Assembly: GCA_964035545.1 (NCBI GenBank)
Contig: CAXIUT010000043.1
Location: forward strand, 1-19,724
Direction: 5' to 3'
DNA from: Bugula neritina
Taxonomy: Eukaryota; Animalia; Bryozoa
Length of the DNA stretch: 19,724 bases
Position 1 is the stretch's first letter. Each line of letters opens with the position of its first letter. The position numbers and the translations under genes were made by a program. The notes under the pieces are model-generated. The model was not told the origin of the DNA. It did no database searches and worked only from the letters and a program-made list of their open reading frames with translations. Shown piece by piece: positions 1 to 19,724 of this stretch.

Positions 1-58
1 CCCAACCCCAACCCCAACCCCAACCCCAACCCCAACCCCAACCCCAACCCCAACCCCA
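1..58 (+). repeat. Left telomere, (CCCCAA)n
   Basis: About 9.5 perfect CCCCAA units at the window start, beginning CCCAA; Tetrahymena-type C4A2 repeat. Confidence 0.98.
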
Positions 59-2755: not shown

Positions 2756-3987
2756 ATGATTGTGGCATAGATAATGATTGATTATAATTTGAATAATGAA
2801 AAGGGAGAAATAGAACGTAAGAGAGACTTTTGTAACACTGGGATAACTAAGCATGGATTCCATTCCTAACGATAGTAAACAACCCATTCATTATAAGGAA
2901 AACATAATTCTCGAGTAAGGTCGACCGAAGATCATGATCTTACCATACAGCTCCCCATCCATCACGCACTCAGGCATATCCTAACACAGTTCAAAACAAC
3001 TCTTAAAAAACAGTAAAGATAATATGAAATAGTTCGTATAAATGCATCGACATGTGCGAAAAACAAATTTTAGTAATCAGACTCACCCTAGGAGACAAAG
3101 CGAGAAAGCTTTTTCTTTGCCAATAGCCACCAAAATTCATCATCACAGTCAACACCCATGAATTTCTGAGTGTACGAGAAGCCAACATTAAAACTTTGAA
3201 ATCTCATTCCCCAGAAACATTCCAAAAAAGAGAAATCGACTTGCATGAATAAGTAAAAAAGATATATTAGATTTTAATTCAACTAGATCATCTCTTCAGA
3301 CCGCAATAATAACAACTCGGAGAACTAGATTGTGAGTACCAACAAGATTTCTATTCACTAGATGCCACTTCCTATTACATGTTCAGCAGAATGCTAGTAG
3401 ATAGTAACTACACTCTAGGTAAAAAGATGAAAACAGTTTGCTAAAAATTCTAATAACAAAAACATATCGAACATGCTAAAACAGATTAACTTAAATGGTT
3501 AAGTACTGCTTTATCATAGATGAGTAGAGATTTACTTCAAGGCTTTAACTGCTCAAGAAAGGAGTTGCTAGAAATATTGGCATATTGCAGGAAAAGTGTT
3601 TAGGAGTATTTTCATACAAGACATAACCAGTATATAGCCAATTAAGGATACAAAAAGAGAAAATAATCATAGACTTTTCTGACTTAGATCGGATAGCTTC
3701 AAAAATTGATTCCTGCAACTGTAAAAGAACTCAATAGACTTGAAGATTCAACAACTACTATGGACATCTACCGATCTATGTTTATGATAGGACTTATCTT
3801 TAAAACAGAGATCTAGGTAAAGACTTTGAGTTAGGAATCTCTTGGGAGATGTTTTTACTTGATAAAATATTGTTTTTCAGGAGTTATTCACGATAAAACA
3901 AGGATTTTGAAGTGTTCAGGATATCAAGAAGAAGATTTTTAATAATTCATCAGTAAATTCAATTTTGATCACGAAGTAACTTTCTGA
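2756..3987 (+). CDS. Hypothetical helical protein, weak resemblance to VPS9-domain proteins; start uncertain; intron 3013-3032
   Basis: Frame open 3034-3987 (TGA). Removing the 20-nt intron GTAAAGATAATATGAAATAG joins it to an upstream frame open back to ATG 2756/2774. The VPS9 resemblance (CRKSVEEYFH...IPATVKELNRLEDSTTTMDIY) is by eye only. Confidence 0.65.
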
Positions 3988-4119: not shown

Positions 4120-4185
4120 TTGGGGTTGGGGTTGGGGTTGGGGGTTGGGGTTGGGGTTGGGGTTGGGGTTGGGGTTGGGGTTGGG
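4120..4185 (+). repeat. Internal telomeric tract 1, about 11 TTGGGG units
   Basis: TTGGGG repeats with one G5 variant (4138-4144), ending TTGGG; followed directly by unique sequence with no CCCCAA tract. Confidence 0.97.
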
Positions 4186-4255: not shown

Positions 4256-7200
4256 ATGTCGATCCCCAACACCTATAACCCATCCGACTACGAATACCTT
4301 TTGCGTTCACTCACAGAAGGTAGCAACATAGCCAAAGCATAAGCTCTCAAAAGATTTCAAATTTTAGCCAGTTCAGATAAAAAACAATTTTCAATATACG
4401 CCAAAAGAATTGTATTAGCGTTACAATAACTCGTCAACCTTGATAAAGTACATCTACCTAACTCAGGAATAAATAAATTTACTTACCACCATGCTCACAT
4501 TATAGATAATAAACCTGAACCCAAAAGATATCGAGTACTACATTAAAACTAAACTCATCAAAAAGATAATAAATAATCTAGGAGATTCTAAATCACAACT
4601 AAGAAAAACTTCCCACTACTGCATACTTGCCTACCTTAAAACCTACTCAAATATATAATAAGTCATCACACAATATTGTGAACAAGGAATCAATAGTCCA
4701 GAACCACAACTCAGACAAAAATCTATCAACTCCTTCCAATCCATCATCATCACAGATCCTAACACCCTCAATTGGCATTCACAGTAACTTAAAAAATTAT
4801 TCTAACTACTCCTACAAAAACTCAAAGATCCCAGTCCTTTTGTGCAAAAAGCAGGATAACAATGCCTACTCACTATGTCAAGAATGCAGTAATGCCACAT
4901 TTTCTCGAAAAAACTATCTCCAGCCTACGCAGGTCTCTATCGCATCTTCTGCGATACCCAAAGAGAACTAGGAAACCTATAGTCATTTCACCTTTAATAA
5001 CAAAATCATCAACCAGGAATGATAGTATCATAACCAAGTAAATCATAAAAACCAATCGTAAATAATGCAGTTCATCTATAGAAGATAAATATAATGAGTA
5101 GACAATAAACTATCAATAAACAAGCATTAATTCAAAGAATAGAATAAATAAGAAGAAATTCACTTATATCACAATAACTAGCAGTAAATAAATAAATTTT
5201 ATCACAATAATAAAATAAACAAAAATAAAACAATCGACTACTTCCAGATAAACCTCAAAAACAAACAATCAAAATAGCTAGTTCTCCATAACAGTAATCA
5301 AAATAAAAATAATAATAAAAGTAATAAAAAAAAGCATATTTACAGCCTAATGTTATTCATCCTTTAATATTCGCAACAAAATCATAAAGAATATAAAATG
5401 TTCTAGGAAAACAACTTTTTGATGATCTTAAAAATGATAAAGAATGGAAAGTCAGACTATCAGCCATCGAATAACTATTCACCAAGTTTTAAATATACAA
5501 ATAAGCTATCGATACTAATGTTCTTATGCAAAACGTTCTAGCACCTATGATCAAACTTCTATCAGATCCTTACAACAAAATAGCTACAACTACTCTCAAA
5601 GTGTTTGAATAATTTATACAAATCCCCTCTCTCAACCTACAACTAGTCATCCCACCACTAGTATAAAAACTAGGATAAGGAAAACTCACTCTTAGACAAG
5701 GAATAAATCGTCTAATAAAATCATAATACCTCAAAAACCACAATCCTATCTGGATAGACTCCATTTTATAACTCTTAAAAAAACCTGTTTCTCAACTGCT
5801 AAAATAGTAACTATTAGACATCTTGATAAAATTCTACGAAGAAGATATGATAAAATAATATCCATTTTAAAAGATAGCAGAAACAGCCAGTCCACTCATG
5901 TAAGACCCTAAAACAAAAATAAAAATAAAAGCACTCGATTTACTAGTCAAAATATCCACCACCACCTAAAAACTAGATACAATGAAAACACTCCTCTCCT
6001 CAAAACTCAATCAAGTCTACTTCGAAATGTTCTTAGAAAAAGTAAATATAGAAATGAAAAAAAAAACAAATTTATAAATGAAAAAAAGAACAACACCAAG
6101 ACAAGCTTAGTCTTAGCCTCCACTTAAAGGATAAAATCGATCTATTTCTTTTCCATCTCTCCGTAAACATAAGAGTAACTTATATTTGATAAAGATTCAG
6201 CCAATAACAGCACCTCCAGTTCAATTAAAAAATATGCCAAATCAGTCGACCTCAAACCAACCGCTAAAAGTTCACAAAATATTTGTATATTATATATTAT
6301 TAAGCTCAAAAAGATGAAATATGCTTGGAAACTCCAACTAAAATAAGTCAATTTTAATCATTCTAATAAAGAGAACAAGGATACTTTACACCTCTTTAAC
6401 CCATCAGAAAAAAACCAGGAAAAAGTATCAATAAAAGAATACATAAACCAGTATAAGTAAAACTCAACATCGTCAACACGGTTTAAACAGATGGATTACG
6501 TCCCTTCAGTGATCCTTAAAAATAACTTAAATCACTACCTCAAGATATAAAATCTGAAGACTGGCAAATATCATTTGATGCTTTAACTAAATTAAGAAGA
6601 ATTCTTAAATTTCATCCATAGCTATTTGTTCCAGTCATAGGACGTCCTTTAACTCTTTAAACAGCTAAGCTAGTATAAAATTTACGATCATCTTTGAGCA
6701 AAAATGCGGTAATAACATTAGGGGAATGCGCACAAGTATTAGGTAGAAATCTTGATCCTTAGCTAGATGGTATATTTTCAAGATTAATGAGAAAGACGTT
6801 AGACACAAATTCATTTATATCTTAATAAGTAAAAAAGACATTAATATTGGTAAGTACCAATTGTCATTAGTCAAAGGTATTGTCAATATTAACCAATTAT
6901 CATACTTCTAAAGCAATTCCTGTCAAATTAAATATAACTTATATTCTTGAAGCTATGATTAATAAATAAAAAATAGTTGAGAAATAAATATAAAAAATAG
7001 GAAATATATTAATTAATTTTATGGGAGAAGGGGCTCTCTAAATCAGAGATAAATCTAAAAATTTATTACTTAAATTATTGTAATTAGATAAAACAGGAAA
7101 AATTAATAAAATGATACCATCATAAATCATGAATAAATTAAAAAAAAGATAATGGACCTAAATACTACATTCGAAAATATTAAAATAACATTCGATAGCA

Positions 7201-7962
7201 CCTTCTATCACTCCTTCAGTTACTCCTTCAGTTACCCATTCAATTACTCCTTCCATCAACTCTTAGAATAAAGATTAAACTCTATCAGTCAGAAAGAAAA
7301 AGATCACCACTTTTCCTAAATAATTTTAAGAACTAGAAGAACTACTGAGTAACTGTGCAACTACATAATGGAAAATAAGACAAAATGCTTTATCCAAAAT
7401 AGCTAATATAGTCAAATTACATCCCATTTAAGTCAGTCAATATCGACTCAATACAAGAATAGTTTAAGCATTTGCCAAACAATCAAATGACCCTAACTCG
7501 AAAGTAGCCACTAACGCTCTAACTCTTTTCATGCAAATCATTCCTCTAGTACCAAGAATGGTCTAATCTAACCTAAGCATAATCTCTAACTAGCTATTCA
7601 GCAGTTTTGCTTCTCAAAAGACCTAAGTCAAAGAGCTAGCTCTTATTCTTTTTGACCAAATCGCGTCAAAAGTATAAAATTGGATGCTTGTTCAACATCT
7701 TTGTACAGGAGTTCTTTACGGACCTGCCAAAGGGAAAAGTAATATTTTGATTAAAATGATTTCGATCCTTCCTCAAGCATATAAATAAAAAAAGAATTCT
7801 ATTTAGAAGCATCTATACCCTCTGATAAACAAATTAGCATAAGATCAAAAAGGTGATTTGCTAGTTCCTCTGAGATAACTAGTAATTTTAAGTATGAATT
7901 TAGGTGGAGAAGAAGCCTACTCAGCTTTAAAACAAGCAGCCAAAAGTATGGCTTCTTAATGA
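4256..7962 (+). CDS. TOGARAM1: TOG array regulator of axonemal microtubules (crescerin/FAM179/CHE-12 family), about 1215 aa; introns 4448-4466, 6175-6194, 6285-6304
   Basis: ATG 4256 to TGA 7960-7962; 3648 nt after splicing (divisible by 3). Four TOG/HEAT arrays: LGDSKSQLRK; EWKVRLSAIEEL; LRPFSDPE..SEDWQISFDAL..FHPEL..VENLRSSLSKNA..LDPELD..DTNSFISEEV; EWKIRQNAL..DPNSKVATNAL. The third closely follows the TOG3 pattern of crescerin. Confidence 0.9.
7201..7257 (+). repeat. 12-bp coding tandem repeat (TPSV/TPSI) in a TOG linker
   Basis: ACTCCTTCAGTT-like unit repeated about 4-5 times, encoding PSITPSVTPSVTHSITPSI. Confidence 0.8.
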
Positions 7963-8038
7963 TTTTTCTTAATATTGTATTTTAACTTAAAAAATAATAA
8001 AATTAGCGCTTATTTGATACTTATAAACTTTTAATAAA

Positions 8039-9648
8039 ATGTAGAACAATGACCCTTTATTCTCCTAGCCTAAAAGAAAGAATGACAATTTTAGGAAATA
8101 AATAAGAAAGCAACAATTGAAGGAATTATTCTAGTCTCAAAGATAACTATTTCTGCAAAATCAACATCGTCCATAAAGTCAATAAATAGTCAGTCGTCTT
8201 AAATAAAGCATATAAAATCAAAAACAATTTATACAAGAATGCAGTCTGTCTCTAACAGGCGATCCTAAACCAGAATGGCTACAAGTAATAACTAATCTTC
8301 ACTCATCTTGTACAGCTTTCAATGGGTAATTCAATCTCTGGTTCACACACAATATTATATCAAATTTATCAAGATGTTTGAAGTAGTCTGAAGGGTCTCC
8401 TCCTCAACTAGTACCTCCTATCTGCATTCTTTTCTCAGATTTAGTGTATCTTTCCTGGCAATGTCAGAACAATTTCGTCGAAAGGTTGATGTAGCTCTAA
8501 ATATGTTCCAACTTGGTGATCCAAGGCAGCAGCAAAAAATATTCAGTAAAATAAAAAATAGATATTATCAGACTATGTAGCAATATCTGTCAATATTCTG
8601 ATAAATATCGCAATCAAATGGTATCAGCTGGAGTTGGAGTCTGGATGATCTTGCTCGGCAAATAAATTCTAGAAGAACACTTTGATAACATCCATGTCAC
8701 TCAATATTATCTTGTTTCCTGCACTGGCATTATTAAAGTAATAGAAACTAAAAAAAGAAACCTCCATAACACCAACATCGTACCTCTTTCTTCATTTAGG
8801 TCGTACAACTGATACCATTAGTTGCACCCTACATTATTTCCCCATATACTTCTGTCCAAGTCCTCATAGAAGCACTCGATTGCATCATACAAGTCCTAGA
8901 CTACCATCAATACTCAATCTACTAGAACATTTTCAACTACAAAACTCTAGTAAAACAATTAATCGCTCTATTAACCTATGACAACCATCTGGTCAGATAT
9001 AAAAGCAATTTCGCAATGAGTACTCTCACGTATGTTGAAAATCCAAAAATGATCAGAAATATTTTAGACTCAGGACTTTTCGATCAAATCTGTAACGCCT
9101 ATACCTTCAGAACCAGTCACTAGAACAACGCATACACAAGAATTATGCTCACAACTCTCAATAATATTGCAACTACAACATCTAACCTCAGTATGATGGT
9201 TTTCTAACACAAAGTTTTTAAATTAATCCTAGAACAAACTGACAACCAATAAATGGTATTTTCTTATCTAATTTAGAAAAATAAAACTTAGGCCTTCTAC
9301 TGTCTCAGTACCATTGTCAGTCACATCAATTTCAATTCATTATGTATCCTCATCAAATAACATAACATCTTGCGCAGCTTAGTCCTTGGTTTCAACTAAA
9401 TAAAACATTCTGACGCCAATTGCACTAGATAAATATTGAGCACTATTTCTGTTCTAATTCAATCTTCATAAAAGCTATATCAACCAACCTATGAATCCAT
9501 CGTAGATCAACTATAAAAAACATACAACTTCACTCAAACTCTTTAAGATCTACTAATGACAAGCAAACATTCATTCCTTAACTAGGTCATCAATATAGTA
9601 CATCAACAACTCACCAGCAGAGTCTTCAATGAAGATTAATTTGTATGA
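8039..9648 (+). CDS. Divergent importin-alpha-like ARM-repeat protein; intron 8780-8799 and probable in-frame intron 9256-9276
   Basis: ATG 8039 to TGA 9646-9648. IBB-like N-terminus (RKNDNFRKEIRKQQLKELFESQR) and ARM-like repeats (LCSNICQYSDKYRNQMVSAGV; LVKQLIALLTYDNHLVR; KIKTEAFYCLSTI); about 525 aa. Confidence 0.75.
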
Positions 9649-9707
9649 TCTTATCTTTTGTTTTAATACATCTATAAAAATATAAAAATAACTCAACAGT
9701 ATAAAGA

Positions 9708-10796
9708 TCAAATAGTCAATGAAGAGAACAGTGATAGAGTCAATATCATTCTCTACTACAATCTTAACTGCTTGACTCCTGTTTCAGCCAACTTAATCGC
9801 ATAATTAAACCGAGATAAAGTCTACTCTAGACTCCACTTAGGTTTAGGATCTCGACCGATCTGAGGTCCCAAGTCATCAGTCCCACTAAAATATATCAAC
9901 ACTCGCTTCTATCCCAACTCCAACTGCTTAACATCATCCGCTTCAGGCAATTTATACTTTTCACTAGAATGATTGCACAGCATAACGACATCATAGCCTT
10001 TCACCATTTCTTTGAGATTGTTTGCTATCCTGACATCATATCCCCAATATAGACTTTTTTCAACTCTAGGAGTGTTTTTGGAGACAGCCTAAGCCTAGAA
10101 AACACTTAGTAATTAATTTTAGAAATCTTTTATCCTTAAAGTAACTCTAGTTAAGGGAAGAACCAAATGATCCATTCTTGCTTGTTGTTTGAGGCCAATA
10201 TCAACCCAGCTTCCAGCTCCATTTTTGGTTGGTCTTTCCAAAGCAACTCCATCTCTAAACTAGCATTTCTCATCAGATTTTAAATGATGTCTTGATTCTA
10301 CAGGATTCATTAGTCCAACATTGTTCAAATCTGGATGCATTTTAAACAAATATTTTCTCAAATACTGAGGAGTCTCAAGATATTGAAGGTTTCTAGCTAT
10401 GTATTAAGAAGGTATGAATTTTTAACTTTTCTGAGTATATCCCTGGTCTTTTAATACTACTATCTAATCCACTCTAAATATTGAAGTAATTCTTGCAATT
10501 TCACTTATAAAATAAGCCCGAAGCGCACTCGTCTGAGGAATCTATAAAATAGAATCAGGAAAACAAATAGCTAAATGCGATATCTTCCTTGATCCCTAGT
10601 TATTGACTTAACTAACTTATTATTTTTAACCAGCCTCAAGCAGCTATTCTTACAATATTTTAGGTTTATGTTTATGTTTTTGGTTCAAACATATGGGTTT
10701 TTAAGGTTTATATATTTTCTTTTATTTATGAAGATTTATCTACTAATCTCCTTCATCTTCTTGAATAATAGTAATTTTCCCTTTTTTAGTCAACAT
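9708..10796 (-). CDS. SPOUT1: SPOUT-domain RNA methyltransferase (SPOUT1/C9orf114/CENP-32 family), 362 aa, intronless
   Basis: Motifs AICFPDSIL, EIARITSIFRVDEIVV, ARNLQYLETPQYLRKYLF..HPDL..VGLMNP...HHL, FRDGV, WVDIGL, TRVTL, LYWGYDVR, QLRLEE. ATG 10796-10794 to TGA 9710-9708. Confidence 0.93.
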
Positions 10797-10856
10797 TGAT
10801 ATTATAACTATCAATTAATATATTAATCAATTCAATATTTACAAATTCAAATTAAC

Positions 10857-12350
10857 ATGAAGTTGGGGTTGGGGTTGGGGTTGGGGTTGGGGTTGGGGTT
10901 GGGGTTGGGGTTGGGGTTGGGGTTGGGGTTGGGGTTGGGGTTGGGGTTGGGTTAGTCTCTTCTTCTTACACCCAATAGTTCATCAGCACATAAACATCAT
11001 CATTAACCATCATCTTCAAAAAGATAATAATAGCATTAAAAAACCTAATCAGAGTTACTACAATAAGAAATACAGATAATGGAAAGATAACATAGAAAAA
11101 GAAGATAAACTTTCAGGAAAAGAATAAGTTAACATGCCGCCAAAATTTAATTAAAGTCGTCTTAAGAAAAATAAAAAAATAATCAATAAGAAAATATTGA
11201 TTAACAAAAATAACTGTTTTAAAATCAACCTGAAAAAATAGATAAAGATACAGTTATTTATTAAAAATCAATCATTTAAAAATCAATAGAAATACAAACA
11301 TAGAGTATCATATCAAGAAGAAGATAAAGTATAATATTAAAGAATCGTAGAAGAATATCAGATGAGCACAATAAAAATAAAAGAGTAACTTTAGATATCA
11401 ACGGTATTAGAGACTTCCTAGACCAATCCTAGAACTATCAAGGATCGCTATAAAAACAATATAACAGAAGAGAACATTAGGCAGTAAAATAAGGATTATA
11501 CAAAATGATAGAATAGACTAATTTAAGAGAGAGATAGATCAACTAAAAGACAAATAATATATCATCGTAAACTTATAAAATAAAACAATAAATATAAAAA
11601 CACTAAAATATAAATAAAAATTTAGATCATTTATATCATAAATAAAAACAATAAATATAATAACTAACTAAAACTATACAACAACTCAAAACTTAAATTA
11701 GATCATCTTAGTAAATAAAAAAATAAAGAACATCTTTTGTTTTTATGAAAAAAAACTATAAAATAGACATCATTTCCTATGACATCAAATAAAATAAAGA
11801 ACAATTCTATGTCATGAATAGTGTTTTAGATGATAATATTTATTTGAGAATAAAAAAATATGGATAAAAAAATATACTAAGCACTAAAATAAGCACCATT
11901 TGGGAAATAAAACCTCCTCCCAGAGCTTTATAAGTTGTTCTAAGAGTTCAAATCATCAATAAATACTTCAAATTCAATCTAGAATCATAAAATTAACCCG
12001 TCAACTGTCTCATACGTATTGGTATCTACTACTAACTACTATAAATTCTTTAAGAAGACATAAAAATCCTCAACGATATTTATGGTCTCAAAGAACTATC
12101 TCTTAACTCTACGAATGATGTCCTCAACTTTAAAATAGAACTAAGTTATTCCGCATCAGTAAAAGTAACAATCAATTTGCTTGAATTGGGATAGGAAGGC
12201 TCCTTTTATTTGGAAACTATTAATAATAATCCAGAAAATATTTCTTTTGGATTGAATCATATAACTGCAATTAGTGACAAAAATTAAAATTTGACTTAAT
12301 TTTTAGCGAATAAATTGTAAAAAGCAAAAAGATAGCTGAGAACACAATGA
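10857..12350 (+). CDS. Hypothetical protein with charged/coiled-coil N-terminal half and beta-rich C-terminal domain; 5' end spans the internal telomeric tract
   Basis: A single frame has no TGA from ATG 10857, through the tract, to TGA 12348-12350 (followed by a second TGA). The next in-frame ATG is at 11079. No family recognised. Confidence 0.75.
10862..10951 (+). repeat. Internal telomeric tract 2, exactly (GTTGGG)15
   Basis: 90 nt of perfect telomeric repeat flanked by ATGAA and TTAGTCT; no CCCCAA tract follows. Confidence 0.97.
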
Positions 12351-12424
12351 TGATTAGTTATAGTTTATTATGAATGATTTAGTTGATATATAATTAATAC
12401 TTATTTTGAAGCAATAAAGGCATC

Positions 12425-14158
12425 ATGTCTAACTCAGCCATAGGAATCAACATCAATCAGAGTCCAATTCAATAAGACAATAAAATTTATAGCAGTAACC
12501 AAACAAGTTAATATGGGAGTGATTTTAGAGATAAATATTAGGGATCAAAGCATTCAAGCTACAATCTTAGTTCGAAAACAGAAAATAAATCAATGATATA
12601 AAAAATAATTTAGTAATCAGAAGAACAAATAATTGGAGGGAAAAAGAAAAGACTCATGGATTAGAATAATTTTAATTCGATGATTAAGATATCTCTATAA
12701 GCAGCAGAATGTAAGGAACAGATAAGATATTCCTAACAAATTCAAAAATAAAATAAAATAAAATAATATTAAAAAGGATAAATATAAGTAATTATTTACA
12801 AAGATGAACAAAAAAGACCTCAAATCAACAAACAATCTAAACCATAATAAATATCATCAAGTTTATCTAACTCTCCTGAAAGCAACGATTCTCAATAATA
12901 CTAAAATCATCTAATATCAGCCATTTAGTGCTATATAAGCAAATCTCTATAGAATAAAAACAAATTCAAACAAAAAATAATGAGATAAACTTCTTTGTTT
13001 ATTTAACAAAAATAACAAAATTATAACTAATCTCAAAATAAATCATAAAGGTCATAAGATATAAGCCTATAACCTTCAGCATAGCCATCTTCAAATTACA
13101 GCATTTAAACCATCAGATAAAAATATATAAAATATAAAAAATTATACAAAAAAGAACACGAACTCAACAAGGAATTGATAAAAGATATATCAGATATCAA
13201 AAGCTAATTAAGATCATGATCTTCATTAAATATATCTATTAGTAATCAATATTCATTAAATATGTCTATTAGTAATCAATATTCACTAAATATATCTATT
13301 GGTAATCAATATTCACTAAATATGTCTTGTAATAATCAATATTCACTAAATATGTCTATTAATAACTATACTATTAAAATTTAAATCATGGACACTTTAA
13401 AAAGGAAAAGAGGGATCAGCCTTTCACATAGACCTCACTCCATTCAGCCATCAGCATAAACACCAACCTAAAATAAACAAAAGTCTCTCATTTTTAACTA
13501 CTCGAGATATCCACTGTCGAATATTAGTCGATCTGTCTCAATACCAAAACCAAACATTCAGTTTAATTATCTTAATAGCTTTCAAAGATAAATACCTAGA
13601 TCAGTTAGAATAAATTAAATAAATTTCATTGAGAAGTATAACTATGTTCCCAAAAGAATAAATAAAAAATGTTAATAAAATATTCAAGTTTGTGAGAATC
13701 TACCTCAAAGAAAAGATTTAAGAGTATAAAAGGAAACTAATTTTGATTTAAAAGTAGAAGTATAAAGCAAAATAATATTTGAACATCAAAAGATGGAAGC
13801 TAATATCAGTTAAAATAAAGATATAAAATAACCTTAAACAACTTAAATTATCATTTAGCAACAATAACCTCTCAAATAGATAAAATAAAATACGAAATAG
13901 CTACTCAGTGAAGACAACAAGATGTTTTAGTCAAAGATTTTAACAATAGATGAGAAAGAAAAGTTTAAAGTAAAAGAAAAGGAGATAAAAAAGAGATAGT
14001 TTTCACAATAGAATATTGAAAACATAATGATAATTCCTTAAATAAATACAAAAAAAATAAAGAAAAATAAAAGAAATGCTCAAAATGTACAAAAAATGGA
14101 AAAAAGACTTCTATAAATCATAAAAATATGCTAATTTAACCTTTAAAACCAATCTTGA
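12425..14158 (+). CDS. Low-complexity Glu/Lys/Ile/Asn-rich hypothetical protein with one internal in-frame TGA (13217-13219); may be a nonsense allele or two genes
   Basis: ATG 12425 is open to TGA 13217; the same frame then continues without a stop to TGA 14156-14158. Confidence 0.6.
13222..13370 (+). repeat. 30-bp tandem repeat, 5 copies
   Basis: Unit TTCAYTAAATATRTCTATTAGTAATCAATA; encodes (SLNMSISNQY)-like decapeptides in the host frame. Confidence 0.92.
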
Positions 14159-17736: not shown

Positions 17737-19437
17737 TCAGTCATCCTCGTCTCTCATCAACATCTCCTTGTTCTTCAGTAGAACTCCTCGGATCTACTCT
17801 CCTCGTCCTTCCTTGCCCATCTTTGAAGAATCTTTCAATATTCCCATCGATTCCATCTGAATCAGTTTTTACTCAGCTTAGGTTTAGACAGTTATTCCCA
17901 TAGCTTTTGCTGATTTGATTTCTTTCTTTTACTTTTTGATGGGTTTATCTAGTTTGGCAACATAGTCGACACAAAACTTTCTCATTTAATCAAGAGATTT
18001 ATCTTTATTGAGAATAGCACCAAAGCTAATTAGTATTTTTCTACCCAAAGCCTAGTAGATATTAGGATCATAGAATTTATCACCAAACCTAAAGACCCCT
18101 TTCTAATCAGTTCTAACATCTTTAAATAGTCCAGTTTAAATCGTATAGCAATATGGAGAATTAGTCCATTTATGAGCAACAACCCGAATACACCCTTCTT
18201 TTGACAAATCTTAATTTTTATCTTTAGTATTCATTTGTTTTTTACTAAAATTACAACTTTTAAACTCCATATTCTAACAAATAGTTGAAAAATATTTAGC
18301 ATAAAGAACGCTTTCAACTTGCATACGGTTATTACCTACCTTAATATCATTATACCCATATTATTGCCAAATATAAAACAACTCTTCTTATTCCCATGAC
18401 CATGCAAATCAAAATACGCATAGAGCTCACGACGAGTCAGCTCAACTATCGCCTTTATGGCAAAACAAGACGGTTGTAGCAATAGGTCAGGTAAATGATA
18501 AAATCTATTTAAATTTTGACCCAGACTATCCATGCGATTGTTGCCAAGAAATACGCCATCAGGATTGAGCATGGGAACAACTAATACATAAAATTACTAT
18601 CTTAGTTTTATAGCTTCAGAATTGTCACTTAGTAACCACTAGAGTAGACCTTTTAAGGCATAACTTGCTCCTACCTATCCAGGATGCACTCGAGATGTTA
18701 CCATAATCAAAGGTTTATGAACCTATTTGAAGTGTTCTTAATTTTATCTATTAGGAAATAGATTGTCAATATATCTTTCACTTGGAAGGTTACGAACGTC
18801 TGAACCACTAATCGCCAATAAATGCAAAGGTCGACCTACTTCAACCCATAAATACCTTCTCTAGACAGCACCAACGTCTAACGATTGAAATAGATGTTAT
18901 TTTTCTTTCTCATTCTATACTCCAAACTTTAAATAAATTCTTAATTTTATCCAAAAGACCAAGGATAAGTCAAAGCAATGTACATTTTTTTATTAGCCTT
19001 CAAATCAACTATCATTTTCATATTGATATCTCCCTCAGGCATCATCTAAAATTCCACAGGCATTCCCAATCTGCCCCACTAACCTCCCTATTCCCTAACT
19101 ACAGGTCGATACAGATCAAAGACTTTTGACTACTTTAAAGGAGGGTTACGGCAGCAGTGAGAGTATTAACTTTTTGAAGTGACAACTTGACAGATTATAG
19201 ATTAAGATTGGATTAAATATAGAAATAGAACCATGTTTTTGAGCTAGGTTTGATATCTTTATCTTTGCCAAAAGATAATAACAGTTACTTTATAGATAAA
19301 TGCAATACGTTACGAGTTAAATCGATGTTAACTGTATTCAAATTACCAGAATCGAAGTTACCTGAAAATTATAAGATAGAATTCATAAATGGTAATTTAA
19401 ATGTGTTCTTCTTTGCTGTTATTGAATCTCCCTACAT
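17737..19437 (-). CDS. AGBL5: Cytosolic carboxypeptidase (M14 tubulin deglutamylase), CCP5/AGBL5-like, 546 aa; introns 18336-18355, 18836-18855, 19130-19149
   Basis: FSGNFDSGNL, WFYF, TYPWSF, SRVHPGE, PMLNPDGV, GQNLNR, DLHGH..KKSCFIFGN, CNFSKKQM..KD..SKEGCIRV, YTIE. 1641 nt spliced. Alternative start at 19386. Subfamily assignment is from motif recall. Confidence 0.9.
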
Positions 19438-19613: not shown

Positions 19614-19724
19614 GGGGTTGGGGTTGGGGTTGGGGTTGGGGTTGGGGTTGGGGTTGGGGTTGGGGTTGGGGTTGGGGTTGGGGTTGGGGTTGGGGTTGGG
19701 GTTGGGGTTGGGGTTGGGGTTGGG
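19614..19724 (+). repeat. Right telomere, (GGGGTT)n
   Basis: 111 nt of perfect repeat to the window end, ending TTGGG. Confidence 0.98.

Follow-up and report, generated by a model that had tools for sequence, protein, structure and literature searches.

Contig C52 carries a perfect telomeric repeat array within the second codon of an apparent protein-coding gene, which raises the question of whether any DNA molecule is built in this way or whether the array marks something else. The window analysed here is this entire contig (19,724 nt, telomeric at both ends), taken from an assembly of 321 contigs totalling 216 Mb. The array at 10862-10951 is exactly (GTTGGG)15, preceded by ATG (10857-10859) and AA (10860-10861) and followed by TTAGTCT from 10952, as the first-pass annotation had described and as both the sequence and TRF (period 6, 15.0 copies, 100% matches, unit GTTGGG) confirm. 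In telomere units it reads G(TTGGGG)14TTGGG, and a chance origin of such an array is excluded. The same annotation proposed that telomeric DNA had been inserted between native neighbours at a break re-joined without loss, so that an expressed protein would start with MK(LG)15.

Most likely, the array in codon 2 is an assembly artefact and the MK(LG)15 start is not real, because the tract would be the terminus of a short chromosome form that took the place of 90 bases of a longer one. The account that we regard as probable combines a real site of telomere addition, lying 65 nt upstream of the start codon of the divergent SPOUT1-type gene, with a read tail that overlays an equal length of a longer isoform.

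A ciliate chromosome and the gene at the tract

Contig C52 is a whole macronuclear chromosome contig of a ciliate with G4T2 telomeres, in which TAA and TAG are sense codons. The reassignment is evident from the divergent gene to the left of the tract (Table 1), a full-length member of the SPOUT1 family: its match to PF02598 (Methyltrn_RNA_3) at 9729-10574(-) scores 202.8 bits (E 6.4e-58; curated cut-off 27 bits), spans profile positions 2-301 of 302 and reads through nine TAG and four TAA codons. Glu is the commonest partner of UAR codons in the paralogue alignments (12/72), a share too low to fix the identity of the encoded residue.

The ciliate is a passenger within the assembly of another organism, since the large contigs C1-C9 are nearly devoid of such repeats (one telomere-repeat match among the matches listed, on C6) and the large genome has a PF02598 gene of its own, exonic and without in-frame stops. 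The latter gene (G000:C3 14070521-14073558, + strand) comprises at least five exons; C52 and C3 thus belong to organisms with different genetic codes. Sequence of C52 is present in runs from three studies under three organism labels. The first 20 kb of each of C200 and C300 have 46-47% G+C and zero telomere tracts, so not every small contig of the assembly is of ciliate origin.

Table 1. Features of the window that bear on the internal telomeric tract
Feature	Position	Strand	Remarks
Left terminal telomere, (CCCAAC)9.7	1-58		Contig begins CCCAACCCC, as do all ciliate contigs inspected
First of the two internal G4T2 tracts (66 nt, with an additional G)	4120-4185	+	Same class as the tract at 10862-10951
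SPOUT1-type putative RNA methyltransferase gene	9729-10796	-	ATG 10796-10794; 13 in-frame TAA/TAG codons
Spacer between divergent ATGs, 60 nt	10797-10856		
ATGAA, probable start of gene R and last native bases before the putative telomere-addition site 10861|10862	10857-10861	+	
(GTTGGG)15, interpreted as a telomere tail from a shorter isoform, replacing ~90 nt of native sequence	10862-10951	+	
Remainder of gene R after the tract, 465 codons	10953-12350	+	TGA 12348-12350; paralogue R' on C122
Right terminal telomere, (GGGGTT)18.5	19614-19724		Contig terminates ...GGGGTTGGG

The frame of the interrupted gene, here called R, is free of TGA from 10800 to its terminal TGA (517 codons), in agreement with the earlier statement that ATG 10857 shares its frame with the open frame beyond the tract, and it contains 44 TAA and 10 TAG codons past the tract. 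The distance of 60 nt to the divergent SPOUT1 ATG was likewise given correctly. ATG 10857 is the sole in-frame ATG upstream of the tract, the frame being closed by TGA at 10797-10799, and judging from the sequence it is probably the true start of gene R, because homology with the paralogue reaches the right edge of the tract and the ATG of the paralogue precedes a tract of its own. The in-frame ATG alone is not compelling, as 3 of the 15 internal tracts sampled are likewise preceded by an ATG in frame with 300 or more open codons. A codon-usage coding profile around the tract did not locate the start of the gene, its signal being too weak against the AT-rich background of this genome. The N-terminal half of the protein is rich in lysine, arginine and glutamate, while its C-terminal half is conserved. 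A Pfam search with the stop-free pieces of gene R returned zero matches; among these and the pieces of the other genes, SPOUT1 alone was clear.

The paralogue R' on C122 is 34% identical to R over 355 aa (E 1e-47), and a second HSP runs from residue 1 beyond the tract of C52 to residue 16 beyond that of C122. The ATG of R' lies 8 nt ahead of a 129-nt tract (junction ATGAATCA|GGGG), with a divergent gene 48 nt to the left. Because perfect repeats occupy one site in paralogues that are only 34% identical, the tracts at R and R' cannot have been inherited as sequence and must be renewed by telomerase, and the common site suggests programmed telomere addition. Telomere-addition sites thus placed 5-8 nt past the ATG, with divergent neighbours at 48-60 nt, characterize both R (10857-12350) and R' (G000:C122 12040-13905); the chromosome-end site seems to have been kept since the ancient duplication that gave rise to the pair. 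The same layout recurs in one more gene, on C100 (ATG 9174, tract 9208).

In an all-against-all blastn of the fetched contigs, the paralogy of C52 and C122 was the only result. A two-gene block at 4256-7963 is duplicated at G000:C122 6616-10218 with 68% nucleotide identity, and the neighbours and tract positions around it differ between the two contigs. The block may have been left by a large-scale or whole-genome duplication in this ciliate.

Independent contigs across the site

Logan contigs of four runs were placed on positions 8900-12900 of the window. Those that bridge the tract come from runs X1 and X2 of another study, whose strains are 0.5-2% diverged from the assembly and are not its source sample. 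In X1 record 2 (2020 nt, depth 22.9), letters 1-1437 lie on 9400-10836, and letters 1562-2020 on 10961-11419. In X2 record 11 (753 nt), which differs from the window by 12 substitutions and a 3-nt deletion, letters 1-173 lie on 10664-10836 and letters 298-753 on 10961-11419. Each contig therefore places 124 letters across a repeat-masked stretch of 124 nt, their number being known and their identity masked.

Both contigs join the flanks colinearly, which bears out the view of the first-pass annotation that the two flanks are native neighbours; a different left neighbour for the sequence from 10952 onward, named there as evidence against that view, is not what these contigs have, as each keeps the same one. 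If the contig were a chimera of unrelated molecules (formed by library ligation, by template switching during amplification or by misassembly), the flanks should lie apart in independent data. Such an origin would accommodate the resemblance of the tract to a finished, end-polished telomere, the lack of C4A2 telomeres on the pieces that follow tracts, and the single-copy state of each flank in the assembly. It is nevertheless very unlikely, given that two runs with allelic differences from the assembly agree on the join, that the order of genes X1-X2 ... R (gene labels, distinct from the runs) is common to C52 and the paralogous C122, and that the pieces after tracts start where genes are delimited, which random breakage would not produce.

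The last point rests on the first internal tract of the window, which lies 132 nt past the TGA of a gene ending at 3987 and 70 nt before ATG 4256, the start of a complete gene. The N-terminus of this gene (MSIPNTYNPSDYEYLL) matches that of its paralogue on C122 (MSIHNSYNPSDYEYLL), which has a further gene, in place of a tract, as its upstream neighbour. After about 141 codons (4256-4681) the gene leaves its frame and resumes in another TGA-free frame up to 6317; the change points to a very small intron or to UGA used as a sense codon.

The spacing of the flanks speaks to the proposed insertion without loss, according to which the native gene would read ATG AAT TAG TCT (MNES..., join ATGAATTAGTCT) and the allele with the tract would give MK(LG)15 if expressed. 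The preserved frame, the position of the ATG 60 nt from that of SPOUT1 and the divisibility by 3 of most tract lengths are all compatible with it. Yet a tract-free join would leave 34 letters between 10836 and 10961, where both bridging contigs hold 124, no contig with a 90-nt skip was reported among the Logan contigs of the four runs, and the run search found no RNA run containing the tract region. Loss-free insertion is thus extremely improbable, and this part of the first-pass interpretation does not stand. Frame preservation was considered as a discriminator and discarded, as most tracts measure 6n+9 nt and insertion and replacement alike keep the frame.

Nor can the 124 letters contain the tract itself, because Logan holds each 31-mer once per contig set and a 90-nt hexamer array has only 6 distinct 31-mers. 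From length and from the way Logan is constructed, some 90 nt of ordinary sequence, as long as the tract, must link the flanks in the X-run strains, and a longer isoform running through the site would provide just this. A heritable interstitial tract would be expected in independent data, and the bridging contigs of these two runs lack it. The earlier notion of the tract as part of a continuous molecule is excluded for these contigs by the uniqueness of 31-mers, and the postulated Leu-Gly peptide loses its support, since a tract missing from continuous DNA could not be expressed.

Sequencing depth to the left and right of the site was ~121-187 vs 35-75 in X2 and 23-28 vs ~15 in X1; the lower values on the right fit a share of molecules ending there. 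A further X1 contig of 9315 nt ends at 9371 and, if colinear, would start at ~57, where the terminal telomere ends. In that case it might traverse the first tract just as the bridging contigs traverse the second, a weaker argument than that for the latter.

Other searches were less productive. The junction 60-mer (10922-10981), of which only 2 words were sampled in the run search, retrieved unrelated runs sharing a near-telomeric word. Six table-11 ORFs (114 aa at 4627-4968, MK(LG)15 and four of 32-43 aa near the site) had no encoding contigs on record, a protein homologue search with the 114-aa ORF gave no candidate, and metagenome scans with the exact right-flank 28-mer and a 59-aa piece of SPOUT1 returned nothing.

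Telomere-like marks, strand bias and the written tract

Both internal tracts of the window are G-strand, with the polarity of a right end, and they belong to a large class. Genome-wide, 470 tract ends of the type TTGGG followed by non-G occur, of which the file has 393 on its + strand and 77 on its - strand (5:1). Ends in the GGGG phase (GGGG followed by non-T) are rarer, roughly 30 genome-wide as estimated from about 12 true ends among the first 100 matches; most matches are five-G variants within tracts, and about 1/8 are true ends. Most fetched ciliate contigs contain one to three internal G4T2 tracts.

Junctions were surveyed on C10, C11, C14, C51, C52, C53, C100, C122 and C320. Internal tracts of 61-129 nt match the range of terminal ones (44-111 nt); an A precedes the repeats in 22 of 28 telomere junctions, internal and terminal alike, after which they mostly start with GGGG; and the distal end is almost always ...TTGGG in internal tracts and at contig ends. 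By these three features the internal tracts look like finished telomeres. The tract in gene R, with the junction AA|GTTGGGG, has the length and 3' phase of terminal tracts and hence the signature of a chromosome end. The near end of the telomeres varies in phase, unlike the far end, which is fixed. Apart from A|GGGG, the 28 junctions revealed no breakage motif, and the nine fetched contigs offered no suitable case of a tract within a long open frame or conserved domain.

A real interstitial tract, such that single molecules of the sequenced strain carry ATGAA-(GTTGGG)15-TTAGTCT, could represent a healed end re-joined in each macronuclear development, or a programmed site of breakage or seeding. 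The assembly itself displays it together with ~470 similar ones, C51 (66.9 kb), longer than one read, crosses tracts, the site is common to R and R', and the reading frame is open throughout. Nonetheless this explanation is unlikely: independent contigs have a stretch of equal length that cannot be repetitive; replacement of exactly 90 nt, and of 66 nt at the first tract if X1 record 1 is colinear, would require a double coincidence; the 5:1 bias of file strand has no biological cause; and the 3' phase is that of a processed chromosome terminus. A general form of the idea, in which the chromosome is broken in the developing macronucleus at conserved sites just past the start codons of certain genes, a full telomere is built by telomerase and the end is re-joined to its neighbour, strikes us as decidedly unlikely. 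Were it true, interstitial telomeres of the same polarity would constitute ready-made points of breakage or seeding, translated as (Leu-Gly)n in R and its paralogue.

Since the strand on which a contig is filed is arbitrary, the 5:1 bias reflects how contigs were written and not biology. We return to the reading of the tract as a telomere tail written over native sequence. The flanks are colinear and equally spaced in independent data, and the tract bears all marks of a true terminus. On this basis, 10861|10862 would be a genuine alternative telomere-addition site, at which some molecules end with a normal telomere of ~90 bp, while longer molecules pass through ordinary sequence into gene R. 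A read of the short form might have been used to its very end and a read of the long form then appended by coordinate, so that the 90-nt telomere tail would displace an equal native length, about 30 codons of gene R. Both the existence of short-form molecules ending precisely here and the exact assembler step are inferred.

String-graph assemblers may keep an unaligned read overhang in a contig. An assembler that tolerates short unaligned overhangs could retain tails at one read end relative to its walk, which would explain a dominant polarity in a file of arbitrary strands; a majority-vote consensus might be an alternative route, but would not explain the strand bias. As in overlap-layout artefacts, the replacement is of equal length, one polarity dominates and the tract ends where the read would end. 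The 77 tract ends of minority polarity weigh against the overwrite reading, and so do contigs longer than one read that cross tracts, such as C51, as they would need several chained reads. The correspondence with a miniasm-style artefact is also imperfect: in miniasm/hifiasm layout, retained tails would show as internal C4A2, opposite to the majority polarity here, and the minority tracts have the other polarity.

Several long ciliate contigs (C21, C41, C45, C46, C63 and C66) contain tracts of both polarities. The tails point outward from a core in C41, C45 and C46 and face each other in C21 and C63, and these contigs resemble maps of nested and neighbouring chromosome isoforms.

Putative chromosome isoforms and other features of the window

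The biology beneath the artefact would be that of alternative telomere-addition sites and minichromosome isoforms, by analogy a new case of an architecture already described in kind. In Blepharisma, alternative telomere-addition sites (ATASs) spread through contigs were found by mapping reads, and B. stoltei has minichromosomal isoforms (PMC9942806). The ciliate described here shares with B. stoltei telomere-bearing ends at many internal positions of macronuclear contigs (seen here in contigs), putative nested isoforms from a few kb upward and a gene-dense genome with short spacers. Its G4T2 repeats and sense UAR codons, on the other hand, place it nearer to oligohymenophoreans or peritrichs than to heterotrichs, its sites appear to lie sharply at gene boundaries and to be common to paralogues, and its telomere repeats are written into the contigs themselves. 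Minichromosomes of Paramecium bursaria reportedly present a picture similar to the Blepharisma isoforms.

In spirotrichs such as Oxytricha and Euplotes, alternative chromosome fragmentation yields nested isoforms with one common end, and a gene may be present only on the longer form. The range of chromosome sizes and the telomere type differ from those found here, where no breakage motif extends beyond A|GGGG. True interstitial telomeric sequences of animals and plants are heritable, as a rule degenerate, and found in all reads. The tract in gene R resembles them in placing telomere repeats between unique DNA in an assembly; in contrast to them, it is perfect, telomere-sized, in terminal phase and absent from independent k-mer contigs.

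It appears that this ciliate with G4T2 telomeres and sense UAR keeps its somatic genome as nested minichromosome isoforms, whose ends appear to sit ~55-65 nt upstream of the ATG of the last gene. At least one such end is common to paralogues of 34% identity, which suggests that the sites are programmed. The nested-isoform architecture could be mined from an accidental ciliate data set within the assembly. For annotation, the written tracts are a hazard, as they would yield false (LG)n, (GW)n or (VG)n peptides and entail the loss of 60-130 nt of real sequence at ~470 places; they are best treated as marks of alternative chromosome ends and not as sequence.

Some further features of the window were recorded. 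A 30-nt unit repeated 4.8 times (90% matches) at 13222-13365 encodes in-frame SLN(I/M)SI(S/G/N)NQY repeats within an open frame. A stop-free piece at 18339-18593(-) includes MLNPDG...NR and DLHGH and has a below-threshold match to zinc carboxypeptidase M14 (E 0.05). Nearly every 500-nt segment of the window has more C than G on the + strand, regardless of gene orientation, and the cumulative GC skew is -6.7.
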